Shown here: in pieces, positions 439-56,553 of the stretch
Position numbering within the stretch: position 1 is the first letter of the stretch
How the letters are laid out: every line of letters begins with the position of its first letter
Assembly: GCF_006345805.1 (NCBI RefSeq)
Contig: NC_043012.1
Coordinates: 8,680,001 to 8,744,000, forward strand
Direction: 5' to 3'
Origin: Octopus sinensis
Taxonomy: Eukaryota
Length of the DNA: 64,000 nucleotides
The notes under the pieces: generated by a model
Database searches by the model: none
Told to the model about the DNA's origin: nothing
The model's input: the letters and a program-made list of their open reading frames with translations, nothing else
Made by a program: the position numbers and the translations under genes

Positions 439-749
439 CTAAAAACTATGTCATAGGATTATATGAACCACAACAATAAACAGACAGACTGGATGTCTCC
501 ATTACTCTTACCTGTCTAGATTCAACCTATCTGGGTTGATGGATTTTTCCTCAGCTGTTCTATAGAGCACTGGTACCCCTGGTGAGATAGGGTTCTCCAT
601 GGATAGAACTCGGTCCCCTTGCAGTCAAGAACAACAAAGTAAAACAATAACAACAATCACAAAGATTAGTTTTCAGATTTAAAGTTCAGGTTTACGTTCA
701 TCTTACCAATGCAAAATGGGTAGTATACGTTTGTAAATTCATATATATC

Positions 750-950
750 ATTATCATCATCATTTAATATCCATTTGCCATGCTGGCATGGATTGGACAG
801 TCTGACAGGAGCCAGTAAGGCTGGGAGCCACACCAGGCTCCACTGTCTGCTCGACATGGTTGCTATGGCTGGATGCCCTTCCTTGTGCCAGCCACTTTAC
901 AGAGTGTATTGGGTGCTTTTTATGTGGTACCAGCACTGACAGGGTCACCA
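750..950 (-). mobile_element. RTE-tail SINE / RTE 3' end fragment
   Basis: (ATC)n followed by ttccatgctggcatggattggac...ggatgcccttcct; the same family recurs many times in the window. Confidence 0.75.
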
Positions 951-1113
951 AATAACTTGCAATACAAAGACCCTGTCAGCTGAGAGGAGGGAGTAGTAGA
1001 GAGTGAGGGGGAGTGCTTGGTGACAGTCGATTAGAGGTTTAGAGGGACAGGGATAGATGTCATAGAGACATATATCATCGTTTAACGTCCGTTTTCCATG
1101 CTATCATGGGTTG

Positions 1114-1144
<31 letters not shown>

Positions 1145-2659
1145 GCATGCATACATACATAAATCCTTTCTATAATAGGCACAAGGTCTGAAATTTGGGG
1201 GGTGGGAGCTAGTCGATTAGATTGACCTTAGAACACAACTGGTATTTAATTTATCGATCCCGAAAGAATGAAGGGCAAAACTGACCTTGGTGGAATTTGA
1301 ACTCAGAACGTACAGACAAACCAAATGCCACTAAGCATTTTGCCAGCCATGCTAATGATTCTGCCAGCATACATACATGAACAGACACACACACACACAC
1401 ACACACGTATATATTTAATGTAATCTGCATAAAAATTTCTCGTGTTTCTCCTTCTGTCATGGAGCTGGCTATTCAGAAGGACTTTTGAAATTCTGTTGTC
1501 ACTCATTCTGACAACATGGCAAAGCCATCTTAATTGGGATTGCAAAAGAAAGGATTCAATACCACCAATTTCACATTAAGAGATAAGTTGGTATTCAAAA
1601 TTCTGTCATTCAGTCTGTCTCTGCAAATTGTCCAAAGACATCAATTATGACAGATATCATGTATGTGTGTGTGTGCCTGCGTGTTTGTGTATATACACAC
1701 ACATGCATGTGGCTGGAAAGCAAACGTCTTAACCACACATCCACACATGCTTATATAAACTTCTGTCAACTTGCGTTCAGAAGCAATGATGGATGTATCA
1801 CAAATTCCATTAATTATAAAATTCATTTGACATTATTCCCATTGTTCCAGATCTTTTAAAACAAATCTCTGTATATATAAACAGCAAAATGTCTGTCTGT
1901 GTGTGTGTATCCTTTATACAAATCCACAATTTTTCAGTTAGAGGGTTCGCACTTTCTATGGTCATTCAAAACCGTCCAAGGGTGGTCGTGCACATCTTTA
2001 CATTTCCCCAGTTATCCCACAAAGCAATTAAAAAATCGATAGAAGTGACTTTTTGGTGAATTTTCTATCCAAAACCCCAATCAAAATGCCCGAAACTTGA
2101 TACGCCAATTGAATGCCAGCTAGCTGCATGTGATTGGTCGGAGATTTGGACAGTACTCGCGTGTATGTGTGCACGCGCGCAGCTGTAGATGCATGCACCA
2201 GCACTATATAAAGTAGCAGCTCCCATACCAGTATTACTGATATTGTATATCACACATTATATATATGTTGTATATCACCAAGCTAAAGATATCAAACAGA
2301 CATATCAAACCTGGTGAAAATGTTGGGTAGTTTTTTTGTAGGTTCGATGTTTTGGGAGAGAATGATGTGTTTCTGCACGTGTGCTGTGGGTATCTGGCAT
2401 CTTCATCAACAGACAATGGTTCCGGACTGCTGTGTTCTGATGATAATGTGTTGCTTTGATAGAGATGCCGCTGTGAACGGGTTCGATGATAAAGTGGCAA
2501 TTTCTCTGGAGAAAAAAGAATATATATACACACATATACATATGTAAACAATTTTTTTTGTATCATTAAATTACTAGAATGGCTCTTCCATAATGATTTT
2601 AAAAATTATAGTTCTGGAAATATAAAGAGGTTAAATAGAAAGCAATGACATTTTCTTAC

Positions 2660-2773
2660 CTGCCAGGTGATTATAAGGATAATTACTGGACATCCAATAA
2701 CGCTTCATCATGAGGTCTGGAGCTAACTGGGCAGCTTTCAGTACAATGGTCTCTCGTCCTTGGTTAGCTGCCC
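2660..2773 (-). CDS. Candidate internal exon of an unidentified minus-strand gene (G-AANQGRETIVLKAAQLAPDLMMKRYWMSSNYPYNHLA-G)
   Basis: CAG acceptor, strong CAG|GTAAGA donor, 114 nt, phase 1/1, open in only one frame, non-repetitive; no homology recognised. Confidence 0.3.
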
Positions 2774-3672
2774 CTGACTTAGAGATGTAAAAATAACATT
2801 TCAAAACTGTGGATGGGAAAAATAACAGCATCTTTAGAAAAAAAAATTAACGGGAAAAGATGGACACAGAAGTGATTGTGTGGTTCAGAAGTTCATTTCG
2901 GGTTCAATCCCACGATACAGTACCATAGGTACTGTATTTAGGTACTTGATTATAGCAGTATGGGTATATGTAAACTGTGAAGAAACCCATCAAATAATCC
3001 ATTTTTGTTCTCAAGATTAATCCATTGTTAAGTTCATAACCACTACCTCGCCTTTATTTGGGTCAGCTATCTAAATCCTAAAAAAAAAGGATCAGAGCCA
3101 CAATTATTTCTCCTCTCATTAAACAATTTAACTGTCTCATTCTTGGGCCACTGGGTCTAACTTTACCCTCCACTAAGCTCCTGAGCAAAATAATAGATAG
3201 TTGCATACACATCTGAAGAGTAACAATTGCAGGCAAACTAACAGACGGAATTGGCTGCATCTTCTTTTCCTATGTGTGTTGTTTATTACCACTTTACAGG
3301 GAATCTGGCAGAGATGACATTTAACCTATACCCACTGCAGCAGGAATATGGTGTGACAGGGTTGAATTAAAATTTTCAGAACAAATTCAAAACAAGAAAG
3401 CTCAACTTCCAAGGAGTCAAGTATGCAATCTGGTCTCTATTTCAAATGATAATTATTTTCATTCACTTATATCACTAATGCTTTTCAGAAAAGCATGAAG
3501 ACCACATCAACCCACTCTCCTTTATGCATTTGAGACCATCTGTTTCTAGAGGAGGAGTAAGTTGATCCCAATGTTTGACCAGTACTTTATTTTACTGTCT
3601 CTAGAAGTATGAAAGGCAAAGTCAGCCTTGGCGGAATTTGAACCCAGAACGTAAAGACCTGGAAGAAATACC

Positions 3673-3889
3673 TATTTCTTTATTATCCACAAGGGGCTAA
3701 ACAGAGAGAGGACAAACGGATTAAGTCGATTATATCGACCCCAGTGCATAACTGGTACTTATTTAATCGACCCTGAAAGGATGAAAGGCAAAGTCGACCT
3801 CGGCGGAATTTGAACTCAGAACGTAACAGCAGACGAAATACAGCTATGCATTTCGCCCGGCGTGCTAACGTTTCTGCCAACTGGCCGCC
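3673..3889 (-). mobile_element. tRNA-derived SINE family A, young copy nested inside an older copy
   Basis: A/B-box-like head (tggcagaaacgttag...gagttcaaattcc) and tail ...aaagaaata; 13-bp TSD tggaagaaatacc at 3660-3672 and 3890-3902. Confidence 0.85.
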
Positions 3890-4355
3890 TGGAAGAAATA
3901 CCGCTAAGCATTTTGTCTGACTCGCTAACGATTTTCCCAGCTCGTCACCTTAAAATTGGAAAATAATAATTTTCGCCGTCTGCCACACGAAATCATATGA
4001 ACGACTGACCAATTGATGGAAGTGGAAGTGGAGACAAACTGGAAAGATCGCCTTATACTGGTGAACAATATCTCAAGACTAATTTTAGCAATTCCAACTG
4101 AAGACTTTAACACCAACCAACTTACACCAACACCACATTCACACACACTCTTCGACTCTGTATTTCTGTTGATATTCAATGGGCTTGCTGCAATAAATTT
4201 TGAAAAACGATCTTTTATCTTTTACTTATCTCAGTCATTAGTCTGCGGCCATGCTGGGGCATTGTTTTGAAGAATTTTTATTGAAGGAATCAAATCCAGT
4301 CCTTTTTTTTTTTTTCATTTTTAAACTCAGTACTTATTCTAAAGTGAAATTTGGA

Positions 4356-4793
4356 CAGACGTGAAGAATGTGGACCTTTGGTTGTTTTTTTTTTTTTTTT
4401 TTTTTTTTTTATTACAGAATCCCCCATTTTCGAGAACGGAGATTCTGATTCTGCGATCCCCCCCCCCCCCAAACCGCATTTTAAAATTTTAATTCCCACC
4501 ACCACCCATATTCTTCAAATATATGTGTTTTTTAAATTAAAATTTTACAATTTTTTTTTTCAGAATCATAATCTCCGTAATTTTCTACGTACTTCGGAAA
4601 AGAAAAAATTTTGAAGAAAGTGAAAATTGAAGAATTTGGTTGGGGGTAATAATAATTTTAAAATGCCGGGGTTTTTTTGGTTTTTTTTTGCAGAATCAGA
4701 ATCTCCGTACTCGAAAATGGGGGATTCTGTAACAAAAAAAAAGAAAAGAAAAAAACAAACAAAACTAAAATGGGTGCGGTCCACATACGCCTG
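4356..4793. mobile_element. MITE with long inverted arms
   Basis: 43-bp arms 4412-4454 and 4690-4732 are reverse complements with 1 mismatch. They are flanked by poly-T/poly-A and outer IRs (cagacg..atgtggacc / ggtccacatacgcctg); a third partial copy lies at ~4561. Confidence 0.75.
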
Positions 4794-5049
4794 AAGTTTG
4801 TATGGTAGAAAGAGAGTAAGTTTCACGGGATGCTGTCGTTTTCTTCTTGCGTTTTATGCGCGGAAGCACTTGTTTACTTCTCAATTATTTAACGTACGAC
4901 AGAGTTATCGGACTTGGAATCTTTGGGAAACGATATTAAAATTTAAAAAAAACATAACAAGTCACCTCTACAATAAAAATAAAATTTCTCAACTAAAAGA
5001 TGTTCGTTCTGCAGCAAAAAGGGGATGAGTTCTGGTTGATCATCAATAC

Positions 5050-5147
5050 CTTTCTGTCAATAAGTTTTTTAAATCTATTTCTTCGTCAACTTCTTTCCAA
5101 GACCAATTAAACTCTGAACACGTTTGAATTATCTGCCCTTGTTGCAT
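5050..5147 (-). CDS. Candidate first coding exon (MQQGQIIQTCSEFNWSWKEVDEEIDLKNLLTE) of an unidentified gene
   Basis: ATG at 5147 with an in-frame upstream stop, 98 nt open to an AG|GTATTG donor, in a CpG-bearing unique region; no homology recognised. Confidence 0.25.
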
Positions 5148-5153
5148 GGTAAC
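5141..5153. promoter_or_regulatory. RFX X-box-like motif GTTGCATGGTAAC
   Basis: Close to the X-box consensus GTNRCC(N0-3)RGYAAC; overlaps the candidate ATG. Confidence 0.3.
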
Positions 5154-6059
5154 AACAACACCACAATTTGAACGTCGATCACCACAGCTTTAATAGTCTT
5201 TCCAAATAAAAATCAAATGTTTTCAATTGAAAACTGTAAATTTTAATCGATATTAAATTAAGTGGGTGGTAGATGAAGATTGTCAAAAACCACATACACC
5301 CCCGCCTCTAAAATATTCAGTCACTCAGTAAACGTAGTAGTAGTTGTAGTGGTGGTGGTGGTAGTTTAGCCCAAGGTCAGCCTCTGATTGCTCAGGCTTG
5401 CGATCTAATCAATTGCAACGATCGATTTCAGTAAATAATCATTGTATATTTTCACACCATAAGTTAGATACCAATTTGAACCAGATATAACGAAACACAC
5501 ACACATATAAGATCAAATGGTTTGAGGGAAAGTTGGCTACTATTTCTAGCAGATTGAGCGACCAAATAGAGGCTCTCTAAACATCGTTAATAAGTACAAA
5601 ATTTAAGTATAAAATCATTTAAATTTTGTTTATTGTCGCTAATGTCATTGATACTATATTCGAGAAAGTGATCTCTCGCATTATGACAGTAGCAATGGAG
5701 TTTTTCTTTAAACTGAAGGCCAAATCGAAAGAAAATAGATGCTGAAATGTTAAGATCTCTCTACGCTGGTTACAAGAATCACACAACAATATGCAAACAC
5801 ACAACGGTATGTAAATACATACAGATGACATAAATATATATAATTAGTATTGACAAGGGACTGCAAGTTTCGCCCTTCATTTGAAGTCTCAGTCAACACG
5901 AGCTACGAACTCTACAATAAATTTGACTAGGACCCCTAGTGTTGAGTATTTTTTTTTCTCTTATTCTATTCTTAAAGTTAAAAAAAAATTGAATATATTA
6001 AAAATAACCTCAACTGAAAACACACACACACACACAAACATGCGTACATGAACTCAGAC

Positions 6060-6065
6060 ATAGAC

Positions 6066-6160
<95 letters not shown>
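6060..6160. repeat. Compound (GATA)n(GA)n microsatellite
   Basis: Directly visible. Confidence 0.95.
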
Positions 6161-6694
6161 TATAGATAGATAGATAATGTTATTGTAAGGATAATTTTTT
6201 AACAAGAGAACTAGATTCACGGAAGAGTTAAATGTAGTTTTCACATTAGTACCTAAGATACAAAACCAAAGAAAATGAAGCACAGGTGATATCTGCTATA
6301 TACATACATACATATATATATATGTGTGTGTGTGTATACATATATACTCACTTCTCTCGCACCGATCATCTTCTTCTGGCGATTAAACATGGTTGTCTGT
6401 CTAATTGAGCATTTAATCCCAGAGTTTAACGATGGCTGTGAGTAATTATGTAAGAGCCTGAGTGCTGCTCTTGTAGTGGTTTAAACTGGAGAGTGAGGTG
6501 CTCGCTGGTCGACGTAGCGATGGCGATAGTGTCACGACTGGTGCATTTATTGGTGTTGGTGATAGTGGATGCGTAAATACATCAAGCGGAGATACAGAGG
6601 TGTAGTCGTGGTTGTAGGTGAGATGTACATGGCTCAGAGCTTGCCGGTATGGGAAATGAACGAGTAGTAGTAGTAGTAGCTGTTACGATAAATA

Positions 6695-25250: not shown

Positions 25251-26102
25251 GTTGTGCTTGAGAAAACCCATCCAAGTAAAATTGAGGCCCTAAAGGTATG
25301 TCTGTGCACCTGTACACAATCTATCCCCAACTCATCTTCCTAACACCCGCTTACTCCACCCATGTTCACCATTCACTGCATTCCCCTCAACTTACCTGCA
25401 CATAATCCATCCCTGAAAAGTCTCTTCCGCTCCCACAATCTATGTTCCTAACACCCCTTCCCACCACCTGTGTTTACTCTCTGCACACCTCTTCCCCACC
25501 ACCTCCCACTTTCCTTTCTCTCGCTCACCTTATCCTTCACTTTTATACACCTCCCTGCAACTTGAGGGTAGACTCCTACAACAAGACACCTGTTTCTGTC
25601 CCTCTAATCATACTCACCACTTTGCACAAAGTCACCTCCTTCAATACTAGAACCCTTACTTAGCTAAGGAGTCATGTCTTGCAAATTACTTGGTCTCACT
25701 GGTGCTATATGAAAATGCACCCAGTACACTCTGTAGAATGGTTAGCATTAGGGAGAGCATCCAGCCACAGAAACCATGCCAAAACAGACAGTACAGCACT
25801 ACACAGTCTACTGGCTTGCGAGCTCTCATCAAACTGTCCAACCATGCCAGCATGGAAGGAGAACATTGAATGATTCAATTAGCATTCAATGCAAGGATTT
25901 ATTCAGTCAATAGGTCCCCTCTTTTGTTATATTACTGAGAAAGACCAAATCTTTGGCGGGACTTCAGCAGATTTCTGGTACCCCCAATATATACTACTGG
26001 CTACATCATGCTCATTAAGAAAATTGATAATTATAAAAACAAACAAGATCACATTAAATAGAAACAAAATTTTCCCAGTGTTTTTAAGAGAGAATTTGTC
26101 AT

Positions 26103-26108
26103 TTTATT
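26103..26108 (-). terminator. Distal AAUAAA poly(A) signal of snf/SNRPA
   Basis: Plus-strand tttatt; followed on the minus strand by a CA ~22 nt downstream and a U/GU-rich tract (ttttgtttct..tgtgatcttgtttgtttt). Confidence 0.6.
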
Positions 26109-26289
26109 GTCATTCTCTTATTTATATTTCAATATAAAAGAAAAATAAACAAATATCTCAGTTGGAAAAAACGAACAAACAAAAACTATGAAACTGAAAG
26201 GAAGAAATCTGTCAATGAGTTTTGGTAAGAATATTGTGAATTAGCTTCACCCCCACCACCCACCAAAATGAAGAATGTAAAATGAGAAT

Positions 26290-26317
26290 CCACCGTCGGA
26301 TGGTGCAATGACGATGG
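26290..26317 (-). promoter_or_regulatory. U1 SLII-like hairpin (U1A/SNF binding site) in the snf/SNRPA 3'UTR
   Basis: RNA CCAUCGUC-AUUGCACCAUCC-GACGGUGG: 8-bp stem (one G-U), C-G closing pair, loop starting AUUGCAC. Confidence 0.75.
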
Positions 26318-26326
26318 CATTAATGC

Positions 26327-26350
26327 TGCTTACCATTCCATCTGGTAGCA
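26327..26350 (-). promoter_or_regulatory. Hairpin containing a 5'-splice-site-like U1 site (G/GUAAG) in the 3'UTR
   Basis: RNA UGCUACCA-GAUGGAA-UGGUAAGCA: 8 bp with one bulged A. Confidence 0.55.
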
Positions 26351-26371
26351 AAGTTGTGCCGAATTTGATGG

Positions 26372-26377
26372 TTTATT
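26372..26377 (-). terminator. Proximal AAUAAA candidate, ~66 nt after the stop codon
   Basis: Plus-strand tttatt. Confidence 0.35.
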
Positions 26378-26442
26378 TTGTAAGTTTTACTGAAATGCAC
26401 CAAATCTCTTTCATCATATTTTTACTTGTCTCCTTCCTTGTC

Positions 26443-26602
26443 TTACTTCTTAGCAAATGTGATTTTCATTGCATTGTTTGGTGTAATCTTGAAGCCTTGA
26501 AGTGCATCCTTTGCAGCACCAGCTTGCATTTCATTTTCAAATTCAACAAACGCAATATCATGTCGACCAGGCACCAAACGAACCTCTTTGAAACCAGGAA
26601 AT
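26443..26602 (-). CDS. SNRPA: snf/U1A-U2B'' coding exon 6 (RRM2 C-terminal half, stop)
   Basis: [52 protein letters not shown]; ttttag acceptor. Confidence 0.98.
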
Positions 26603-27186
26603 CTAAAAGAAGAAAGGAAAAAACCCATTAAAAAAAATCACTAGATAACATAGCTATGGTATATTTTGATAGATTACCCTCAGTAAAAAAAAAAAATTTT
26701 TTTTTAAAAAAGCATGGTTTTGTAAGCCACAAAACACTTGCTAATTTCACAATGATGCCACAGTGGTACCTACTTACAGCAACATAGACTGAGCTGTCAA
26801 CAGTTAAGTGTCTTGGTCATACATACAGTGCAGTGAGCTACACCAGACTGTGGTAACTATTGACAGCCAGGTGGACTCTGGACTGTGCACCTAGCTGCAT
26901 CAATCTTGGTCATTGACACAGTATTGTAAAGTATACCATACTGTGGTACTTACAGTAAGGCTCATTGGGTTGATGACATTAGTCATAAACACAGTACAGA
27001 GTTACACAGCGCTGGTACCCGCCTACAGCTAAGTGGACTGGACTGTTGACAGTTAAGTGCCATTTCCACAGCAATAACAGGACATGAACAACTAATTAAC
27101 TTAACTGCCTGTCCCATTATCCAATCTGGTGACCTCTTGTCATAAGTGCATGAGTCAAATGCTTCCAATGTGAAACTAAGACTTAC

Positions 27187-27304
27187 TGATTGAACAACAT
27201 CGACAACATCATTTCGGTGGTTTCCTCGGGAAGGTTGGTTAAGAACAGAATTTGGTTAGGAGGCTGTTCTGGAATGGTATTTGGTGCTGCCAGATTTGTA
27301 GAAT
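27187..27304 (-). CDS. SNRPA: snf/U1A-U2B'' coding exon 5
   Basis: [40 protein letters not shown]; AG/GTAAGT; phases 1/2 fit the neighbouring exons. Confidence 0.97.
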
Positions 27305-27360
27305 CTGCAATAGAAAATGGGTTGAATTAGTTACTAAACACAGCTACATGGAAATTTTTA

Positions 27361-27740
27361 GGCGGCGAGCTGGCAGAAATGCTTAGCGGTATTTCGTCTA
27401 CCGCTATGTTCTGAGTTCAAATTCTGTCATGGTCGACTTTGCCTTTCATCCTTTCGAGGTCGATAAATTAAGTACCAGTTACGCACTGGGGTCGATGTAA
27501 TCGACTTAATCCATTTGCCTGTCCTTGTTTGTCCCCTCTTCGTTTAGCCCTTTGTAGGTAGTAAAGAAATAGGTATTTCGTTTACTGCTACGTTCTGAGT
27601 TCAAATTCTGCCAAGGTCGACTTTGCCTTTCATCCTTTCGAGGTCGATAAATTAAGTACCAGTTACATACTGGGGTCGATGTAATCGACTTAATCCGTTT
27701 GTCCCCTCTGTGTGTAGCCCCTTGAGGGCAGTAAAGAAAT
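27361..27740 (+). mobile_element. Tandem (dimeric) SINE family A in snf intron 4
   Basis: One head and two bodies; the second starts at ggtatttcg directly after the first tail. Confidence 0.85.
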
Positions 27741-29173
27741 ACATTGGAATTTTTTAGAGATAAAGATAAATACAGTGACAATGCCCAGCAAACAATAATG
27801 GAGGGGGGGGGGGTGTTCCTTCTAGAAACTACTGAAATATTCTATTTACTTCCATCTGACTAAGTTGTGGCTGTTTGGCTTGAACTTAAAACTATGAATG
27901 AGCAGACATGATCAAAGATGCTCCAGCCATGACCATTTATCAGATTTCTGTTGAAATATATTGGGTAGTCCACACTACTCTGTAAGGAGCATAGGGACAG
28001 TTTCCTGGTTTTTCTGGTGTATACATTCCTCTCTGGACAGGACGCCGGTCTATCACAGGACTACTTGATTTTACCAGCTGCATGGAATGGAGCAACAAGG
28101 AATGAAGTGTTTTGCCCAAAAACACAACACAATGCCCAGTCCAGGAACTGAAACCACAATCTTACAATCAGGAGTCCAACACCCTAACTACTAAGCCATT
28201 GCCTTCACATTGTTTAAATCAATTTTTTCTATTTGCTTATATCACAAATAAATAATGGATCAACCGATTAGGAACTGTCTTACAGATTCATGATCTCCTT
28301 TTTTTTTAAACTACTTTTGAGAAACTTCCAATGGTGATGGGCCTCCTATATCAGACTGGAGTAATATCTTAAGTCATACCAATGTAAAAAAAACAAGTGG
28401 AGCCTGTACTGAAGCTCAATCAGTGCAGGGGGAACCCCATCCTATCTTAGATGTTAGAAGCAAAATCTCATTAGAAATATTATGTAACCCTTCCGTCTAT
28501 TTTGTCATGTTTGCATGGGTCAGGGTGAATTCATTGAGGCAGTTTTTTAATGGCCGGGTGCTCTTCTTGTTACCAACACTCACTGGTTTCCATGGAAGGT
28601 AATATTTCCCCATGACCAGACATGCTTTACATGGAAGACTGGAAGCAAACGACATCACTTGTATGATGGGGATACGCATTTACAACCATCACAGGGTGTT
28701 GAGACATGAATACAAACACACACACAACAGGCTTTGAAGACATTTGCCTAAGGTGTTACGAAATGAGACTGAGTCCAAAACCAAATGGTTAGGAAGCAAG
28801 CTTCTTAACCACAAAGTGATGTCTACTCCTGCCAGCACTGGTTAACAGCCATTACTCGGCCAATGGTACTTTTATTGTGTTTTAATTGAAAGTTCCAAAC
28901 AAGGCAAGGAGCCACTCAGTGTAAGGGAATATGAAGAAGGAGAAATTAAGACGAAAGGAATGAATTTACTTTAGACTTGAAAGAGTATAGGTCATAAAAA
29001 TGGGGGAAAATAACGAGATGGAAGTTTGAGAAAAAAATAAAAGCTATGACCACAGGAACACTTCCTTATTCAAGGAAGCACAACAACATTTGGATGAAGA
29101 CACTGAGTTTCAAGTATTGATAACGATGATGATGATGATGATTATACAGCATGAATGACAAACAATCACTTAC

Positions 29174-29286
29174 TTTGAACAACTGGCTGCTGTAATTGTT
29201 GTAGTACAGGTTGTTGAGGAACCGGTTGACCAGCCATTGCTGAAATAGGTTGGATGGGAGGTGGTACTACACCAGCTGCCTGGGCC
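29174..29286 (-). CDS. SNRPA: snf/U1A-U2B'' coding exon 4 (Q/P-rich linker)
   Basis: AQAAGVVPPPIQPISAMAGQPVPQQPVLQQLQQPVVQ; ttccag acceptor, GTAAGT donor; 113 nt, phases 2/1 keep the frame. Confidence 0.9.
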
Positions 29287-29482
29287 CTGGAACATAAACA
29301 TAATTTACAATATCAGATCAATTAAAAAAAAGAAAAAAGGACATAACATTTGACAAATTTACTTCAATTTTTGTTCAGCCTCAAGTCAATCTTAACTCAG
29401 CAGGCGCTTTTAATCAAAGGCGTTCCACCCATGACAATCCCATGTCCTTTTTCTTTAAAACTGCAAGGTGTGATTAGAAGCA

Positions 29483-29850
29483 AAATTGATTGCTACTTTT
29501 AGTAGATCAAGGAACTATTAAGAGGTTCCTTTGTTGTGTTATTACTTGGTCTATACTGTGAGCTATAACAGCAGTAAAGAAAAAAAGAAAAAAACAGACT
29601 GCACAATGGAATTGAACGTGGGACCATGTGGTTGTAGAGCAAAATTCTTAACCAAACTGTAGTGTGATCAGAAGCAGAATTGATTGCTACATTTAGCAGA
29701 TCAAGCATCCATAAAGAGGTTCCCTTGTTAGTTTATTACTTGGTCTATATTGTGGGTTATAACAGCAGTAACAGAAAAAAAAAAAAACTGGAACTGCACA
29801 ATAAAATTGAACCAAGGATCAAGTGGCTGGGAAGCAAAATTCTTAACCAC
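29483..29850. repeat. Diverged ~195-bp tandem duplication in snf intron 3
   Basis: aattgattgctac...gcaaaattcttaacca occurs at ~29483-29652 and ~29678-29850. Confidence 0.7.
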
Positions 29851-29977
29851 ACAACTGTGATGCATTTGGGTCTTTATACAGACTCAACAATTGCTTACAG
29901 CTGGAAGTATTTGTTATCCCTGGAGAGAGAGGCCAGCCATCTTTGACGCTGTAAGATAAGATATAATATGAAGTGTA

Positions 29978-30376
29978 ACAGGAGTGGCTACGTGGTTGTA
30001 GCTTGCTTACTAACCACATGGTCCCGAGTTCAGTCTCACTGCGTGGCACCTTGGGCAAGTGTCTTCTACTATAGCCTCAGGCCGACCAAAGCCTTGTGAG
30101 TGGATTTGGTAGACGGAAACTGGAAGAAGCTCGTCATATATATACATATATATATATATATGTATATGTGTGTGTGTGTGCATATGTTTGTCTCCCCAAT
30201 ATCGATTGACAACCGATGCTGGTGTGTTTATGTCCCCATAACTTAGCGGTTCGGCAAAAGAGACCGATAGAATAAGTACTGGGCTTACAAAGAATAAGTC
30301 CTAGGGTCGATTTGTTCAACTAAAGGCGGTGCTCCAGCATGGCCACAGTGAAATGACTGAAACAAGTAAAAGAGTA
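29978..30376 (+). mobile_element. SINE family B, full length, antisense in snf intron 3
   Basis: Near-identical to 19561-19949; ends ~20 bp from the exon 3 donor. Confidence 0.9.
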
Positions 30377-30400
30377 TATATATGAATAACCCTGACTCAC

Positions 30401-30549
30401 TTAGCAGCAGCGGCAACAGCCTGTTGGGAAGCTCCCTTCTTGCGTTTCTTATTTTCTGGCTCATCATCTTTTTTCTTCTTTGGTCTTTCCATATAGGTAC
30501 CTTTCATCTTAGCAATGATATCAGAATCTTTCTTGGAATATTGTATTCT
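30401..30549 (-). CDS. SNRPA: snf/U1A-U2B'' coding exon 3
   Basis: RIQYSKKDSDIIAKMKGTYMERPKKKKDDEPENKKRKKGASQQAVAAAA; CAG/GTGAGT. Confidence 0.97.
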
Positions 30550-31777
30550 CTGGTAAAACAAATGGAAAAAAAAACACATTAGCAATTTATTATTATTTTT
30601 CAAATGATCATCATTTAACATCCGCTTTCCATGCTAGCATGGGTTGGATGATTTGACTGAGGTCTGGTGAACCAGATGGCTGCACCAGACCCCAATCTAA
30701 TCTGGCAGAGTTTCTACAGCTGGATGCCCTTCCTAACACCAACCACTCCGAGTGTGTAGTAAAAATACAAAATCAAGGATACATTCCACTTTGAAAGGAC
30801 AAAACTAAAGCTACATAATAGGATCCTTAGCCTCTTTATTTCAATTAATTTAGAAAAGAGAATTTAGTGAAATAACTTTATCATTCTTAAGCTGGTAGTT
30901 GGAAAATAAATGATCATAGAATTTTGATGGAATGGTTTTCATTCAGATCCTTTTAAATAGGAAGATTTTTTTTTAATCTCAGAAGTTGGAGTATCATCAG
31001 GTTCTTTTGGTATCAAAAGAGTTAAAAAAGAGGACAAATCCTGTATATTAACGATTTCATAAAGAAGGGCAAAACAAAGATTTTGACCAGACAGTGTAAT
31101 TCTATATGTGTATAGTGATTTCAAAATTTGGCACAGGGCCAGAAATTTCAAGGGAGGGGCATAAACTGATTATATCAACCTCTAAAGGGCGAAAGGCAAA
31201 GTCGACATCGGTGGAAATTGAACTCAGAACATAAAGATGAATGAAATGCTGCCGAGTATTTCGTCTGACATGTTAACAATTCTGCTAGCTCACTGCCTTG
31301 TTTATATGTATATAGTGAAAGTACAGACATGGCTGTGTGGTTGAAAAGATTGTTTTCAAAACATAAGTGGTCATGGGTTCAATCCTAATGCATGGTACCT
31401 TAGATGTCTTCTACAAGAGTCCCAGGCTGACCTAGGCCTTGTTGTATAGATTTGGCAGATAGCAACTGAAAGAGGCTGTCGTATGTGTGTACCCCTTGGG
31501 CTGACATTCTATGATGATTGCAAATGAGTATCACTGTCATATGAGCCATGTCGTTCATATACTGTCCTCTATGGTGATATATTACTTTGCTTAGAAACAG
31601 GTGAGGATTGGTAACAGGAAGGGCATCAGGCTGCATAAAATTTACCTCAACAAATTCTGCCTGACCCATGCAAGCTTAAAGAACCAGGCATTAATGACGA
31701 TTAAGAATTGATAAAATCTAGCCACATGTAGGAAATACACAAACACACATTAAGGAAACATGAAATGTTGATCTTAC

Positions 31778-31950
31778 CATTGGTTTGTCATAGAACGGGA
31801 AACCTTGCATTGACCGGAGAGCATTTGTGGCACTGTTGATGTCTTTAAAAATTACAAAAGCTTGCCCTCGACATTTCAAAGTTTTTAAGGCAACAATGTC
31901 AAGAATTTGGCCGAATTGTGAGAAAATTGCATATAAAGATTTCTTTAGTT
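31778..31950 (-). CDS. SNRPA: snf/U1A-U2B'' coding exon 2 (RRM1)
   Basis: [58 protein letters not shown]; CAG/GTAAGA; the DIVALKTLK loop is the SNF/ancestral type. Confidence 0.98.
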
Positions 31951-31989
31951 CTGGAAAAAAAGAAACAGTATAATCACAGAGAATTATAG

Positions 31990-32430
31990 AAATATACACA
32001 GGATTAGAATATATTGGAGAATAGAAAAGATTGGATGTAGGTCAAAAGCTGACCAGAAGAGAATTAATGCATTCGAGCTTTGGTGTTGGAGAAGACTTTT
32101 ACGGATTCCATGGACAGCGAGGCTCACCAATGGAGAAGTTCTTACCCAGATCAAGCCAAAACTGTCGCTAGAAGCTAGGATCACCAAGCATAGATTGGCA
32201 TACTTTGGTCATATTGTGCGGACAAAAATCCCTGGAGAAGGACATCATGCTCGGAATGGTCAGTGGTAAGAGAGGAAGAGACCAACCAAGAACCCGCTGG
32301 CTTGACACCATCAAGAGTGACACGGAAATGGCCATACCAATCTGAAAGAAGCAACCCGGGATAGAACTGGCTGGAGAACACTGATCCAATGAGTAACCAA
32401 GAGTCAACTTCGACTGAATGGACAGATAGA
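31990..32430 (+). mobile_element. RTE (BovB-like) LINE 3' end
   Basis: KRINAFELWCWRRLLRIPWTAR...LAYFGHI...EKDIMLGMVSGKRGR..PRTRWLDTIK...RLNG. Confidence 0.9.
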
Positions 32431-33081
32431 TAGGTCAAGAGTTAGCAGAAGTAAATTAAGGTTAACAAACATGACCAATGCTTAGCACGACAATAAAAGA
32501 AATGTTAAAGCAACACAATGTAGAATCATTATTATCCAATGTCTCCCCTTCCATCATGGCATGGGTTGGGCAGCGAGACAGGAAGTGAGAAAACTTGCAC
32601 CAATCTCTACTGCCTGTTTTAGCATACTTTCTACAGTTGGACGTTCTTCATAATGCCAACCACTTTACAGTGTACTGAATGCATTTTGCATGGCATCAGT
32701 AGCAGTGACATCACCAAGTAACTTGCAAAACTCCTTGACTATGGGGTAGCAGTATTGAAGGAGACGGCTTTGTGCCAGGCGATGAGGTTAATAGTATGAA
32801 GATGGACAGAAATAAAAGTCTTGCAGTAGAGGAGATATGTGAAGATGTGATGGGGCTCCAAATGAATTTATGAAACCAAAAATTCCAGGTTATTACATTA
32901 AATACACTTCAAGAGTTGTAGCAATCCATATTCTGGAATGTTATTACATAATGGGAACCTCTAATCACCACCCAAATTATTGGACCTGTAAAAGAAATCT
33001 AGTTTGTCTTTAGGTCCTTGTTAATCTGTTACCATCTGAATGATACTTCACTAAATTTCAAAGCAAAGCTAGTCAACTTAC

Positions 33082-33145
33082 CATCTTTCTTAATGCTTTC
33101 ATTCAAATTGTTAATATAAATTGTGTGGTTTGGTCTGATGTCCAT
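33082..33145 (-). CDS. SNRPA: snf/U1A-U2B'' coding exon 1 (exon spans 33082-33160 including 15 nt of 5'UTR)
   Basis: MDIRPNHTIYINNLNESIKKD + G; ttttccag acceptor at 33161-33163, GTAAGT donor; total CDS 777 nt = 258 aa. Confidence 0.97.
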
Positions 33146-42265: not shown

Positions 42266-42296
42266 ACGTGTGTGTGTGTGTATATATATATATATA

Positions 42297-42336
<40 letters not shown>

Positions 42337-42579
42337 ATATATATATATATATGTGTGTGTGTATATATATATATATATGTGTGTGTGTATATATATATAT
42401 ATGTGTGTGTGTATATATATATATGTGTGTGTATATATATATATATGTGTGTGTGTATATATATATATGTGTGTGTGTATATATATATATGTGTGTGTGT
42501 GTGTGTATATATGTATGTGTGTGTGTGTATATATGTATGTGTGTGTATATATATATGTGTGTGTGTATATATATATATA

Positions 42580-42648
<69 letters not shown>

Positions 42649-42661
42649 ATATATATATATA

Positions 42662-42705
<44 letters not shown>

Positions 42706-42940
42706 CAATAAGAGGCTACCAAATAGGAAAGCCTTGTGCTAGAAAGAGCAGTAGAAAACTCAAAACCACCAAAATGGATAAATTTTTGGTGGTTTTGAGT
42801 TTTCTACTGCTCTTTCTAGCACAAGGCTTTCCTATTTGGAAGCCTCTCATTGTATTTCTATGTGAATAATTTATAGTCTAATGACTAATGCGTTTTTTGT
42901 GGTAGGCCACTGGTAATAATAATTTCTTATTACCCTATTG

Positions 42941-42971
<31 letters not shown>

Positions 42972-43022
42972 CAAGTGTGTATATATATATATACATGTGT
43001 GATATATATATATATATACATG

Positions 43023-43054
<32 letters not shown>

Positions 43055-44500
43055 GATATATATATATATATATTATATATATATATATAGATTATATATA
43101 TATATATATATATATAGATATATATATATATAACATGTGTACATAGGAAATATATATATATACATACATATATAGATATATATATATACATACATATATA
43201 GATATATATATATACATACATATATAGATATATATATATACATACATATATAGATATATATATATACATACATATATAGATATATATATATAATATACAT
43301 ATATATATGTATATATGTGTATACATTTGTATATATATACGTGTATATATATTTATATCTATATATGTGTGTATATATCTATATATATGTGTGTATATAT
43401 GTACGTGTATATATATATATGTATATACATGTATATATATATGTGTATCTATACATGTATACATGTATGTATATACGTGTTTACATAGGAACATATATAT
43501 ATATATGTGTGTATATATGTGTATCTATACATGTACGTATGTATATACATGTGTACATAGGAACATATATATACACATGTGTACATAGGAACATATATAT
43601 ATATACACATGTGTACATAGGAACATATATATATATATACATGTGTACATAGGAACATATATATATATTCATGTGTACATAGGAACATATATATATATAT
43701 ACATGTGTACATAGGAACATATATATATATTCATGTGTACATAGGAACATATATATATATATACACATGTGTACATAGGAACATATATATATATACATGT
43801 GTACATAGGAACATATATATATATACATGTGTACATAGGAACATATATATATATATACATGTGTACATAGGAACATATATATATATATACACATGTGTAC
43901 ATAGTAACATATATATATATATACATGTGTACATAGGAACATATATATATATTCATGTGTACATAGGAACATATATATATATATACACATGTGTACATAG
44001 GAACATATATATATATACATGTGTACATAGGAACATATATATATATATATACATGTGTACATAGGAACATATATATATATACATGTGTACATAGGAACAT
44101 ATATATATATTCATGTGTACATAGGAATGTATATATATTCATGTTCACATATGCACGTATATATAAACATGTGTACATATGCATGTATCTATACCTGTGT
44201 ACATATGCACGTATGTGTGAATGCATATGCATGTATATGTGTGTGTGTATATATACATGTATATGTATATATATGTATGTACATGTATATATGCATGCGT
44301 ATGTATATGTATATATATGTATGTACATGTATATATGCATGCGTATGTATATGTATATATATGTTTGTACATGTATATATGCATGCGTATGTATATGTAT
44401 ATATATGTATGTACATGTATATATGCATGCGTATATATATATATATATATATGCGTGTATATATATGCATATTAATGTGTGTATGTATGTATATATATAT
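42266..44500. repeat. Large compound (TA)/(TG)/(CA) satellite, including a ~30-bp minisatellite at ~43540-44130
   Basis: Directly visible; explains all the long Y/I/H/T/C/V ORFs. Confidence 0.95.
42700..42858. mobile_element. Hairpin MITE (74-bp arms, 9-nt loop), TA-flanked
   Basis: 42701-42774 is the reverse complement of 42784-42857 with 2 mismatches; TA on both outer sides. Confidence 0.75.
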
Positions 44501-45039
44501 AGTGCGAGAAGTTGAGGTTATAAGCAATAAAGGTGTCAGGTAATGCTGAATAAGTGCTATAGACAGACCATAGTTAAGTTCCAGATACGGTAGTATTGTG
44601 GAGTGACACAAACCAAGTCTTTGGTTGGTGTAAAGTCCCTTCCAGTCCTAGAGTTACGTGGTAGTGGAATAGTACAGTAGACAAAGCCATTAGAACAAAA
44701 AACAGGTCTGGAAAACCTAGGAGGGTAGAGGTAGCAGGGAACTATATCAGGTAGCCAAAAGGGAGGCTGGGCGGCAGGTATACATAGCCAAGAGTGAAGG
44801 ACCAAAGAACTGAGGTATTTCGGATTGTCAAACAGTGTGAGAGAAAATTTTGATGTCACAGGAGATAAATCTATCCGCATGGATGATGGTGCATAAATTA
44901 AGGGGTCGATAAATTAAGTACCAGTTACGCACTGGAGTCAATACAATCGACTTAATCTGTTTGTCCTCTCTGTGTTTAGCCCCTTGTGGGTAGTAAAGAA
45001 ATGGGTATGAAGCCAGGAAAAGCCCCTGGCCCATCATGA

Positions 45040-46270: not shown

Positions 46271-46335
46271 TTATTATTATTATTATTATTAGTGGCTTTG
46301 ATTCTAGTAACATTTTTTTTTCTTTGTTTTGCCAG

Positions 46336-46479
46336 AGTTTTTTAGGTTTTGGCCAGAGTGCTGAGATTGACATTGTATTAGATGGCCAAGAGAGCAGGAA
46401 AACTGCTGAAATTAAAACTGAAGAAGGCAAAAAAGAGAGACATTTTCTCTACTTTGATGGTGAAACAGTATCCGGCAAG
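46336..46479 (+). CDS. VPS26: VPS26 exon 2
   Basis: SFLGFGQSAEIDIVLDGQESRKTAEIKTEEGKKERHFLYFDGETVSGK; CAG/GTGAGT. Confidence 0.97.
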
Positions 46480-47011
46480 GTGAGTTTATTGTTTAGGTAT
46501 CTTTTCTAAGACATGTATTTGCTTTATTGTCATTTTTTTTTTTTTAATGCTCTCATAATTTGAGCATTATTTTACTATTCAAACTTTATTGTTTTAAAGT
46601 AATTGTTTCTAATTCGGGTACAATCTATAAATAGATGGTCACCATAGAACTTATATTAGATAAAAATAACAGTTTGTAAAACACGATCTCGTTATTGCGA
46701 GACAGAATAATAAACAGCATGTATTTAGAGCTTTCTGTGTATATAAAAAAAAAAAACCTGTCTTATTGTAAACTTGTTACATAAAGACAGCAGCTGAGGT
46801 TGTGATAAATCAAATGTCCAATTAGCTAAACACCTGTACATCTGTGTCACAGCAACCATTATTGACTGAAGTATGCTTTTCACTTCAGAGCACTAAGACA
46901 TCAACACCTTGTCAGTTATAACCTTTTTGTCTCTGTACCAATTCAACATTTGTTATCCCAGAATGGGAATTATGGATTACAGATATTGTTTTACACTGTT
47001 TATACTTTGAC

Positions 47012-47330
47012 AGGCTCATGGCTCAGTGGTTAGAACGTCGAGCTTACGATCATGAGGTTGTGAGCTCGAATCCCAGACCGGGCTGCGTGTTGTGTTCTTG
47101 AGCAAGACACTTTATTTCATGTTGCCCCAGTTAACTCAGCTGTAGAAATGAGTTGCAACGTCACGGGTGCCAAGCTGTATCGGCCCCTGTATCAGTGGCG
47201 TGCAGAAGGGAGGCCGGTATGCATGGGCGACTGCTGGCCTTCCATAAAACCACCTTGCCCAGACTTGTGACTAGGAGGGTAACTTTCTAGGTGCAATCCC
47301 ATGGTCGGTGTCGTGACCGAAGGGGGTCCC
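47012..47330 (+). mobile_element. tRNA-derived SINE, third family (partial minus-strand copies at ~8090-8275 and ~27960-28210)
   Basis: tggctcagtggttag A-box, gagctcgaatccc B-box, tgtgttcttgagcaagacacttt central domain. Confidence 0.8.
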
Positions 47331-47484
47331 AACCCGACTTTGACAGGGTTATTTGATTACTAATTAAGGTGTTCCTTGAATAGTTAACTTACAGAGTTAT
47401 TATTGAGAGAGCAGGAGTTCAGATGCTAGCATTACTCAATTAAGAAAATTATCTTTGATAATAAATTAACAAATCCTGGATTAC

Positions 47485-48714
47485 CTACTCAATGCTTTAA
47501 CTCTTTTGTTACTATATTTGTTGGAACATACTGTCTTTCATAATCGTCATTTAACGTCTACTTTTCCATGTTTGCATGGATCAGATAGCTTTTTGATAGA
47601 TTTGGGGCAGATGCCCTTCTTGTTGCCAACTCTCACTTGTTTCCAGGTAAAGTAATATTTTACCAAGACTAAAAACAAACACTGCTTGTATGATGGTGAT
47701 GCCCCAATTACAGTCATTACATGGTGTCAAGACAAGGGTGCGCACACACCCATACAGAGTTTCTTTCAGTTTTGTCCTCCAAAATCCACTCACAAGGCTT
47801 TGGTTGGCCTGAAGCTAAAGTAGATGACACTTGCCCAGTCTTGTAATTTAGCAACAACTGCCTGCTTCTCTAGTTTGGTTGTCTTTAGTTCTTCTTTGAT
47901 ATTTTCCACCTGGAGAAAAAAAAATAACAGTTGAAATATTGAAAACAGTGTTGTGTTTTGTTTTCATACAGTATATTTACTATAGCCTACAGATTATTGG
48001 GTCAAAAATATACTGTAAAATCCACTTGACAGGTAAAGTATATGACTAAGACATTTAACCTTCAACAACCCAGTACTTCTGACTACTAACAGAGAGTATA
48101 GATGACTGCTGTAGAAAGAGTAATGTCAGCACTGGACAACAGATGGATATTTTGTTGGTATCTAATACTTACGATATTTTCTGGGATATCTAACGTCGCA
48201 TAAGACCTATTTACCAAATATATTTTGTGAAAAAACAAAAAAACAAAAGACCCTATTTGCCGAATATATTTTGTGAAAAAAAAAAGTCAAAAACAAATTT
48301 AGTATGTTTCATCACACACTTATTGAAAGATATTTCAAATTAGTTTTGTAAGGGGAATAATATATGATTTATAACAGTTATGTGAGTTATAATTAGTTAA
48401 GAAGCTGGTAAAGGTGATATGCTCCCATGGTTACAGTTCAATGACCGAAACTCAGTAAAAGAAGAAAAAATTACCTCAGCAGATATATTTTCCTGCTTCT
48501 TTTTAAATATCTCTAACTCTTTGTGCGACTGGCCAAAGAAGTATTCATTTCTTCAGTGTTGGACAAAGTCTTGGTGTGATCTGTGATTAACTCTTGCTCT
48601 CTGCTGTGGAAAAAAAACTTCAGTGTTGCTGATCTTCTTTTTCAACTGCTGGTATTCTTCTCTAGCTTCATCTATGATGCTATTTAGTTTCTTAATCTCT
48701 TCCCCATGGTTTTC
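47485..48714 (-). pseudogene. Antisense, intron-containing coiled-coil gene fragment nested in VPS26 intron 2
   Basis: Exon 48475-48714 (240 nt, AG..GAG|GTAATT) joins in phase 0 to exon 47838-47909 (tttttttttctccag|VENIKEELKTTKLEKQAVVAKLQD). That exon is split by a SINE and resumes at 47485-47542. Two frameshifts and a stop are present. Confidence 0.6.
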
Positions 48715-49789
48715 CTAATGATAACATCATCATCATCGTTTGGCGTCCGCTTTCCATGCTGGCATGGGTTGGACAGTGCAACTGGGGTCTGGGAAGCCAG
48801 AAGGCTGCACCAGGCCCAGTCTGATCTGGCAATATTTCTATGGCTGGATGCCCTTCCCTAACACCAATCAATATTGGTAATAATAAAGATGATAATACGA
48901 ACTGATACACTGCTTTTTTTAAAATTTCCACTCAACCTTTCTTGATACAACCAAGCCTCAATCTTTTCAACCACTGAAAACGATTTACATTCACCAGGAA
49001 TCAAAAGGATTTTTTTTTTTTTTTTTTTTTTGAAAAATCAAACAAATGAATCTTTTCTTAAGAGAGATGAATCCAAGATGGCGGCCTCTGATCAATATGT
49101 GCTTTTTAAGCTCCTAGAAAATCGCCGAGAAATTTCAGAAAAGCTGCGAACGCTATTATAAATAAAACTCAAAAATCCTTGAATGTCTTCGTGAATGACT
49201 AAGTATTGACTTGAGGAAATATAAAGTGAAATATATTAAGCAGGAAGAGTCTTTTGCGAACGTAGTAATTATAAACAGTGCAAATAATGGATTTTACGAA
49301 ATTTCAAGATTAATTGCGATTTTCGATCGGAACAAAAGAATAAAGTAAAATAAAATCATCATCTGAATAACTTTTGAATGAAAGCGTAACAAGACATATT
49401 TAAAGAAAAAGAAAAACCATCTGAAATATATAGATGGGAAGAACAGAAAATATATACACGTATACAGCACATGGTATCACTTTAACTTGAAGAGAAGTTC
49501 GAAATCTTCCGCTGCCTTGGAAATACCCATCTCTTTGGAAAAACTAGATAAGCATCTGTATATATATTTATATATACATTCCTTGGATATTGGAACAGTA
49601 CCTTTAATGACTCTACAAAATGAAAATAACTGTGTCTCCTTGCCGTGAATTTGTGTTACCATGTGCAGCAACCACAATTGAAAACACGCCAACCTACTTC
49701 GTAATGATATCTGTGAGTACATGCTGAGTTCTAGAAAAACCATACACACAGTTCCTCTAGAACACCCATACACACAGTTTTATTTATCA

Positions 49790-55068: not shown

Positions 55069-55085
55069 GTACGTAATTCTTTTAA

Positions 55086-56500: not shown

Positions 56501-56553
56501 TGTGAAGGCACCACCTTTGAGTGAAGTTGAATTAAAAAGTGTGTCCTGAACAG

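Follow-up and report, generated by a model that had tools for sequence, protein, structure and literature searches.

The snf locus

The 64,000-nucleotide stretch of Octopus sinensis DNA considered here (contig NC_043012.1, positions 8,680,001 to 8,744,000 of the forward strand; hereafter the window, within which all octopus coordinates are given) contains the octopus orthologue of snf, annotated in O. sinensis as U1 small nuclear ribonucleoprotein (snRNP) A. In its 3' untranslated region (3'UTR) lies a hairpin that displays AUUGCAC in a loop closed by a C-G pair, as does stem-loop II (SLII) of U1 small nuclear RNA (snRNA), and a 5' splice site stands just upstream of it. On balance we favor the reading that this conserved island is an SNF-binding feedback site of its own gene, which would act together with the adjacent U1 site. 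The features of the gene and its 3'UTR that are needed below are as follows, with a slash marking the splice boundary and a plus sign the distance past the stop codon.

26443..33145, minus strand: snf / U1A / U2B'' orthologue (O. sinensis U1 snRNP A), whose spliced translation equals XP_029646304.1
33145-33082, 31950-31778, 30549-30401, 29286-29174, 27304-27187 and 26602-26443, minus strand: the six snf coding exons, with GT-AG boundaries
26445-26443, minus strand: snf stop codon TAA, placed by the spliced reconstruction
26372..26377, minus strand: AAUAAA at +66, upstream of donor and hairpin, specific to Octopus, with none at the equivalent place in Argonauta or Sepia
26284..26345, minus strand: conserved 3'UTR island, CCAGAUGGAAUG/GUAAGCAGCAUUAAUG-hairpin-AUUCUC, delimited by MAFFT alignment
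26328..26337, minus strand: 5' splice site and U1 snRNP site AAUG/GUAAGC, with GU at 26333-26332 and G/GUAAG invariant in three cephalopods
26310..26317, minus strand: hairpin 5' arm CCAUCGUC, with all 8 pairs kept in three cephalopod lineages
26298..26309, minus strand: 12-nt loop AUUGCACCAUCC, starting AUUGCAC, read from the window sequence
26290..26297, minus strand: hairpin 3' arm GACGGUGG, whose first G is the loop-closing partner of C26310, read from the window sequence
26103..26108, minus strand: AAUAAA at +335, candidate main poly(A) signal about 180 nt past the hairpin, a spacing that resembles Sepia
25898..25903, minus strand: AAUAAA at +540, a further candidate poly(A) signal by hexamer match

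Joining the six minus-strand exons reproduces XP_029646304.1 (P0001) exactly, and the 3' region of the gene agrees letter for letter with the O. sinensis assembly. The protein contains two RRM_1 domains (Pfam), human U1A (3pgw_A) aligns with it end to end, and RRM1 is near-identical across the RNP motifs. Two positions in the cephalopod proteins depart from this pattern: codon 17 (33097-33095, minus strand) encodes a serine at the position of human Lys20 and fly Lys17, and codon 48 (31873-31871, minus strand) a cysteine at the position of human Met51 in loop 3. The K17A substitution in fly SNF lowers affinity tenfold (PMC5992148). These cephalopod residues might accompany the 12-nt loop or altered loops in the cephalopod snRNAs.

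A U1 SLII-like hairpin in the snf 3'UTR

In DNA letters the hairpin (26317-26290, minus strand) reads CCATCGTC ATTGCACCATCC GACGGTGG, within the minus-strand context ...AUGCCAUCGUCAUUGCACCAUCCGACGGUGGAUUC..., and it extends from +126 to +153 relative to the snf stop. The stem has 8 bp, seven of them Watson-Crick and one U-G, and the loop is closed by C26310-G26297; this matches exactly the description in an earlier note on this DNA, which gave the sequence, an 8-bp stem, C-G closure and a 12-nt loop about 125 nt after the stop. Loop nucleotides 1-8, AUUGCACC, are the same as those that begin the Drosophila U1 SLII loop, AUUGCACCUC. The three 3' nucleotides of the SLII loop are mainly spacer, and a longer spacer may be tolerated. 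Weber et al. 2018 (PMC5992148) show that SNF alone binds U1 SLII, whereas binding to U2 SLIV needs U2A', and that SLII is set apart by its C:G closure and by a C as the seventh loop nucleotide; the octopus hairpin shares these two features and by them is of the U1 type. The earlier note had placed its loop length between those of SLII and SLIV, which does not hold against the Drosophila structures, as 12 nt exceeds both the 10 nt of U1 SLII and the 11 nt of U2 SLIV (PMC5992148).

The heptamer by itself is not enriched in the window, where ATTGCAC occurs nine times against 12.7 expected, and the case therefore cannot rest on its count. However, only one of these nine sites is carried by a stem that has a C-G closing pair and a length of 4 bp or more, and it is the one in the snf 3'UTR; AUUGCA followed by C or G is found just once within 700 nt after the snf stop, in the terminal loop. 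In 400 simulated 64-kb sequences, C-G-closed AUUGCAC hairpins with stems of at least 8 bp arose at 0.01 per window, both strands included. The octopus hairpin is present in both the minimum free energy (MFE) and the centroid folds, and its 71-nt context is not unusually stable (z = -1.3). The hairpin is beyond chance and located in the single 3'UTR that gives it meaning.

The proposal that it is a functionless chance hairpin or a fragment of a U1 or U2 snRNA pseudogene would draw on the background frequency of the heptamer and the ordinary stability of the local fold. We regard it as effectively refuted by the simulated frequency, by conservation from octopods to decapods inside otherwise unalignable UTRs (described below), and by flanks that show no U1 or U2 similarity even at E values up to 10; moreover, the stems differ among taxa, which repeated insertion of one snRNA would not bring about. 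We also considered a microRNA site and rejected it: a target would carry the complement of the miR-92-family seed, and AUUGCAC is that seed.

Conservation in cephalopods and the adjacent splice donor

The island is the sole block that can be aligned among the snf 3'UTRs of Octopus, Argonauta and Sepia, and the invariant columns of the MAFFT alignment cluster in it. Argonauta hians has an identical hairpin at +362 in a UTR that is elsewhere unalignable. About 235 nt are inserted there between stop and island (6290-6530 of contig L002), rich in short repeats of the GTCAGTCGG and CAACAACAG types, and an AUUAAA stands between the Argonauta donor and hairpin where Octopus has AUUAAU. The Sepia orthologue (P0003) falls in a 90% protein cluster with a Sepia pharaonis protein, and one of its runs, SRR20545808, is from S. 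esculenta (PMC9538352).

The first of two hairpins in Sepia reads CCAUCGUC-AUUGCACCGCCU-GAUGAUGG, with the 5' arm and AUUGCACC unchanged relative to Octopus. Its loop differs at positions 9, 10 and 12, and in its 3' arm, GAUGAUGG, a G-C pair has become G-U and a U-G pair U-A, such that pairing is kept; Octopus, Argonauta and Sepia all retain the 8 stem pairs and a loop length of 12 nt. A cephalopod alignment of this kind had been named in the earlier note as a check on its proposal, and the proposal passes it, as the loop heptamer and C-G closure are invariant and the stem is kept by pair-preserving changes in Argonauta/Sepia. The second Sepia hairpin, about 35 nt past the first, is CCAGC-AUUGCACCUC-GCUGG, with a 10-nt loop identical to that of Drosophila U1 SLII, and both Sepia hairpins fold (z = -2.8).

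The island also contains a 5' splice site 16 nt upstream of the octopus stem, such that the hairpin starts at what would be intron position +17, and the distance from G/GUAAG to the AUUGCAC box is 20-25 nt in Octopus, Argonauta and Sepia. We examined use of this donor in ten Sepia RNA-seq contigs, all coding for an identical SNF protein. Two of them, L004 (run SRR8281681) and L005 (ERR4030425), leave the unspliced sequence exactly at GAAUG/GUAAGG and enter another exon, and the other eight run through the donor unspliced. The 3'UTR donor is thus used in Sepia, in two independent RNA-seq runs, and the hairpin there lies inside an optional intron. The target exon (L005 901-1356) contains a 151-aa open reading frame (ORF), and could be a transposon remnant or the 5' exon of the next gene; a Pfam search of this ORF gave no match.

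Use of the donor makes a serious rival of the possibility that SNF binds the same site with a different output, in which it promotes or blocks U1 snRNP at the donor and toggles between polyadenylated mRNA and downstream-spliced isoforms, and the two outputs may coexist. Such isoforms would have a long 3'UTR or an exon junction past the stop, and would be degraded or non-productive. We judge this rather unlikely to be the main output. It would account for the two spliced contigs, which come from different runs and join an exon with a long untranslated tail, and for the fixed spacing between donor and hairpin, and a junction in Octopus would fall 109 nt past the stop, a distance compatible with junction-dependent decay. 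In Sepia, in contrast, the junction lies 25 nt past the stop, too near for the classical rule, and the eight unspliced contigs keep the hairpins in polyadenylated mRNA. An RNAalifold helix of 5 bp over GUAAG could in principle sequester the donor, but it is short, AU-rich and broken in Sepia, and we rejected it as too weak. There is a precedent for donor-linked control in the feedback on U11-48K and U11/U12-65K (PMC5473595).

A same-strand gene downstream, LRRC49-like, would provide a destination for splicing from the donor, and in one O. vulgaris annotation it is linked to snf in this way. That model (CAI9733970.1; P0122, 1090 aa) fuses snf to the LRRC49-like gene and skips the snf stop, and its 'WN' codons fit TGG AAT G/ at the donor. 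As the sole hint of donor use in Octopus it is weak, and we do not accept it as proof, since it needs micro-exons of 8 nt and 15 nt, the latter with two mismatches in the window, and looks like a predictor artefact. The model could alternatively mirror read-through transcripts; a mis-merged gene model is probably the better explanation. Because of this fusion model, the 90% protein cluster of octopus U1A also holds entries named 'LRRC49-like'.

One Sepia contig, L006, contains both hairpins and a poly(A) run after AAUAAA at +304 and AUUAAA at +320, about 185 nt past the second hairpin. Retention of the hairpins in a polyadenylated mRNA would suit a role for SNF on the mature or exported message, in its stability, translation or localisation or in buffering free SNF, and recruitment of U1A to transcripts can reportedly raise expression (PMC9136276). 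The coupling to a donor, and the closeness to poly(A) signals in several taxa, point instead to nuclear events. SNF/U1A is moreover mainly nuclear, and we consider a cytoplasmic or mature-mRNA role improbable beside feedback on the nascent snf transcript.

Hairpins in other phyla

Hairpins of this type are not confined to cephalopods. The oyster Saccostrea has three C-G-closed AUUGCAC hairpins after the snf stop, the last of them 20-45 nt before AAUAAA; the snf 3'UTR of Lingula has three or four and that of Owenia at least four. In Priapulus there is a cluster of boxes, two of them on a clear stem, and Pomacea has two boxes with offset stems. C-G-closed AUUGCAC hairpins also follow the snf stop in two Logan transcriptomes, and a marine metatranscriptome contig (L021) contains six or seven tandem CCAAC-AUUGCACNNN-GUUGG units. 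The 832 nt of transcript that make up the termite Cryptotermes snf 3'UTR (L029 / L030) contain zero AUUGCAC; this could reflect loss of the self-site in insects, consistent with there being no Drosophila report, with one insect sampled.

These observations modify two claims of the earlier note. The note spoke of molluscs, but the element is not mollusc-only, as it is also found in a brachiopod, an annelid, a priapulid and many marine metatranscriptome contigs. The note had likewise described a lone hairpin, and while the octopus UTR does have a single AUUGCAC box, the island contains the donor as well, and the hairpins number two in Sepia and 3 to 7 in other phyla.

Within the first 600 nt or less after the stop, the numbers of sense ATTGCAC in 12 taxa are 1, 1, 2, 3, 3, 5, 3, 2, 3, 3, 0 and 3. 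This amounts to an enrichment of about 45-fold: the post-stop sequence, 6.4 kb in all, contains 29 copies, compared with 16 on both strands of the other 159 kb of these loci. Nearly all of the post-stop boxes sit on C-G-closed stems whose sequences differ by taxon, with loops of 10-11 nt. Among 11 aligned non-cephalopod hairpins with ten-nt loops, 96% of cells pair, three of the five pairs vary on both sides, and the closing C-G is invariant; because these 11 were pre-selected for having a stem, the fairer measure is that nearly every UTR ATTGCAC has a stem, against 0 of 8 for the other sites in the octopus window.

A covariance model, R1, built from the 11 non-cephalopod sites returns hits at E of 0.05 or less in 13 loci, every one of them on the sense strand and downstream of the snf stop, and it scores the second Sepia hairpin at 31 bits (E about 1e-6). 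Its top hit in the octopus window (128 kb searched) is the snf hairpin (26316-26291, minus strand), yet a weak one at 13.5 bits and E 0.22, which we attribute to the 12-nt loop and different stem. A further 43 full-length snf-like contigs came from JGI metatranscriptomes. Of the 20 that reach 60% identity and have 130 nt or more of UTR, 13 contain ATTGCAC in the 3'UTR, as does 1 of the 21 with less than 60% identity; all 13 R1 hits at E < 0.1 in the 43 contigs are sense-strand and past the stop.

It is conceivable that the structure is conserved for some other factor, its likeness to U1 SLII being coincidental, and the 12-nt octopus loop, unlike that of SLII, and the R1 value of 0.22 are what such an explanation would use. 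We think this very improbable: the invariant part is precisely the heptamer read by U1A/SNF, together with the C-G closure, variation is free in the stems and in the 3' portion of the loop, and the sites are enriched in the mRNA of SNF itself. The phyla beyond cephalopods also bear on whether donor control is the output, since in oyster-like taxa the hairpins stand directly before AAUAAA with zero GUAAG, an arrangement that poly(A) control fits better.

In two spiralian transcriptomes (L013 945-1170, and L018) the boxes AUCGCAC, AUUGCAC, AUUGCAU and AUUGCAC are set inside long complementary segments, CAGUUGAGC...GCUCAGCUG. These might be presented as internal loops, nearer to the vertebrate polyadenylation inhibition element (PIE), and by eye they suggest a PIE-like long stem with two opposed boxes; we rejected that structure, as it does not appear in the MFE fold and the stability of the segment is ordinary (z -0.7).

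A proposed SNF feedback site

It seems very likely that the octopus hairpin is a selected site of the SNF/U1A type, and we think it likely, by analogy with vertebrates, that it mediates snf autoregulation. More tentative, at slightly less than an even chance, is the suggestion that the site acts chiefly by blocking 3'-end processing. In the mammalian PIE, two bound U1A molecules prevent tailing through contact with the C-terminal end of poly(A) polymerase (PMC2874999; PMC5071671), and a conserved 11-nt U1 snRNP site resembling a 5' splice site, just upstream of the mammalian PIE, co-represses the poly(A) site (Guan et al. 2007, as cited in PMC3157836). The order of parts in the cephalopods matches that of the mammalian U1A 3'UTR, and for this reason we interpret the island as a cephalopod version of the same feedback module.

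We propose that SNF in excess of U1 and U2 snRNPs would bind the SLII-like hairpin through RRM1, with U2A' unneeded, and that the hairpin and the 5' splice site 16 nt upstream would behave as one conserved unit. When SNF and U1 snRNP are both plentiful, their joint presence on the nascent snf transcript would repress nearby poly(A) signals. Fewer productive polyadenylated snf mRNAs would then be made, whether through lack of polyadenylation, nuclear retention, or splicing into non-productive downstream exons, and the outcome would be negative feedback on the level of SNF. In octopods, U1 snRNP on the neighboring donor may stand in for a second inhibitory unit.

Several points weigh against this proposal. 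Octopods have one hairpin, whereas inhibition of poly(A) polymerase in vertebrates takes two U1A molecules (PMC5071671). From the octopus hairpin to the next AAUAAA downstream is a stretch of about 180 nt, far beyond the mammalian spacing, and the AAUAAA at +66 precedes the hairpin, which makes its inclusion in mature octopus mRNA putative. Octopus RNA-seq contigs spanning the snf 3' end would speak to this, but the P0001 cluster (Logan) holds none, and a query with the C-terminal 93 residues gave none closer than 91% identity. The serine and cysteine at two RNA-contact positions suggest that the RNA preference of cephalopod SNF may be somewhat altered. Covariation among the cephalopods is one-sided, with zero double compensatory changes, and by R1 alone the octopus hairpin is not significant (E 0.22). 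A GTAAG partner outside the cephalopods is not significantly enriched (14 observed against 8 expected), which fails to support a donor-plus-hairpin rule for all phyla, and we have dropped that rule. Finally, binding by SNF, the sense in which regulation runs and its molecular outcome are our inference; the sequence, the structure, their conservation, donor use in Sepia and the spread among phyla are observed.

Neighboring loci

The downstream gene to which the O. vulgaris model joins snf lies about 20 kb away on the same strand, with an acceptor, ccacag/, at 2808, and it is a possible splice acceptor for read-through transcripts that leave the snf 3'UTR donor. The corresponding features are:

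520..6390, minus strand: 5' exons of the LRRC49-like gene (6390-6352; 2780-2655, with an alternative start at 2807; 2506-2309; 618-520), located by tblastn of P0121 and P0122
13882-13896, minus strand: candidate 15-nt micro-exon tttcag/AAATGGATGCCTTCA/gtagtc, corresponding to the 'EMVAF' codons of P0122 with 2 mismatches, the sole such match between snf and the LRRC49-like gene

On the other side, Vps26 (46294-61895, plus strand) is arranged head-to-head with snf. The divergent pair is also present in Argonauta, Sepia, Pomacea, Lingula and Owenia (L002, L003, L024, L027 and L028), with both transcripts on one Sepia RNA-seq contig, and its occurrence in these five and Octopus marks it as an old spiralian microsynteny. 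Between snf and the first matched Vps26 exon, at 42273-44501, is a 2.2-kb array of (TA)n/(TG)n and microsatellites of 30-94-nt period, with a GC content of 0.21. Two features of other snf loci were also noted. In Owenia (L028 9474-9603), about 2 kb past snf, a long, apparently perfect inverted repeat scores 60 bits with models of plant microRNA precursors, short of the gathering scores of those models, and is probably a foldback element like a miniature inverted-repeat transposable element (MITE). In Saccostrea (L022 2743-2815, minus strand) there is a tRNA gene, above the Rfam gathering score, on the opposite strand inside the 5' end of the snf span (2501-5643).

Evolution and significance

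PIE autoregulation of U1A is a textbook case of a protein that controls its own pre-mRNA, and has been described as a vertebrate feature. The work is reportedly that of Boelens (1993), Gunderson (1994, 1997) and Guan (2007). In the literature searched, which yielded vertebrate PIE work and SNF structural studies and included few subscription papers, no self-sites in invertebrate snf mRNAs are described. Judged from the sequences compared here, the octopus site apparently belongs to a widespread and, it seems, undescribed set of snRNA-mimic hairpins in invertebrate snf 3'UTRs.

We suggest, tentatively and at slightly less than even confidence, that SNF/U1A self-regulation through such hairpins dates from the ancestor of bilaterians, or at the least from one shared by protostomes and vertebrates, and preceded the vertebrate split of U1A and U2B''. 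The PIE would then be a derived fusion of an older SLII-like array, cephalopods would have cut the array to one or two hairpins plus a donor at which SNF and U1 snRNP choose between polyadenylation and splicing, and insects like the termite would have lost it.

Should the sites be functional, the age of the feedback would increase by hundreds of millions of years, and it would operate in lineages with a single protein for U1 and U2 snRNPs alike. They would also form a natural series of architectures, from one to seven hairpins, with or without an adjacent donor and with a poly(A) signal near or far. Such a series makes it testable whether two bound molecules are needed to block poly(A) polymerase and whether U1 snRNP on a donor can substitute for one of them, and it also addresses what is sensed, be it free SNF, U1 snRNP, or both. 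For annotation, the hairpins provide a simple and specific signature that current models overlook, as Rfam covers the vertebrate form only, and the snf 3'UTR donor indicates where read-through or fusion gene models beyond snf are likely to originate.

Comparison with known systems

No U1, U2 or U1A_PIE hit is obtained with Rfam at gathering threshold anywhere in the window, and at E values up to 10 these three families are absent from 25800-26700, with chance-level matches to snoZ5 and mir-33 further downstream. This search, also proposed in the earlier note, is in line with the non-PIE architecture that the note had suggested. Rfam U1A_PIE (RF00460) does score 23-25 bits on the hairpin clusters of L021 and Owenia, under its gathering score of 50 bits.

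The vertebrate PIE is the closest parallel. The octopus element shares with it a position in the 3' region of the orthologous gene, an AUUGCAC next to a C-G pair, and the presumed purpose of negative feedback from protein outside snRNPs; the order of U1 snRNP site, U1A site or sites and poly(A) signals is also shared with the mammalian U1A 3'UTR (PMC3157836). However, the PIE is one stem with two internal loops (AUUGCAC / AUUGUAC) that binds two U1A cooperatively near the poly(A) signal. The octopus element is instead a single terminal-loop hairpin with a 12-nt loop and about 180 nt to the next AAUAAA, and related taxa have 2 to 7 independent hairpins. It thus resembles a PIE in its 3'UTR location and in the upstream site similar to a 5' splice site, and departs from one in having no two-box structure and no match to the Rfam model. 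The upstream U1 site of cephalopods is a genuine donor, used in Sepia, whereas the best-studied polyadenylation inhibitor resembling a 5' splice site, in the late mRNA of the bovine papillomavirus BPV-1, is reported to be unspliced (PMC5071671).

With U1 SLII itself the hairpin has in common the C:G closure and a loop that begins AUUGCACC, and the second Sepia hairpin has the exact Drosophila loop AUUGCACCUC; the octopus hairpin differs in its loop of 12 rather than 10 nt, its unrelated stem, its pre-mRNA setting, and its flanks without U1 similarity. U2 SLIV shares the AUUGCA core and a loop longer than that of SLII, but has G at loop position 7, U:G or U:U closure and a need for U2A', where the octopus hairpin has C7 and C:G (PMC5992148).

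Control of poly(A) sites by the same factors is known in other genes. U1A controls the immunoglobulin M (IgM) mRNA's secretory poly(A) site (PMC2874999), and U1 snRNP or U1-70K at terminal-exon motifs resembling 5' splice sites inhibits polyadenylation or retains RNA in the nucleus (PMC5071671, PMC9074902 and PMC4380460). The octopus AAUAAA at +66, upstream of donor and hairpin, has a layout similar to that of IgM; nonetheless, the targets of U1A or U1 there are other genes or viruses, not the gene of the factor itself, and the IgM sites depart from the consensus.

In the genes for U11-48K and U11/U12-65K, feedback runs through a splicing enhancer that binds U11 snRNP and changes 3'UTR isoforms (PMC5473595). 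That system differs from snf in belonging to the minor spliceosome and in using tandem motifs resembling U11 5' splice sites, without a protein-binding hairpin. What it shares with the octopus gene is the principle by which the mRNA of an snRNP protein bears a conserved site for its own snRNP, in the service of homeostasis.

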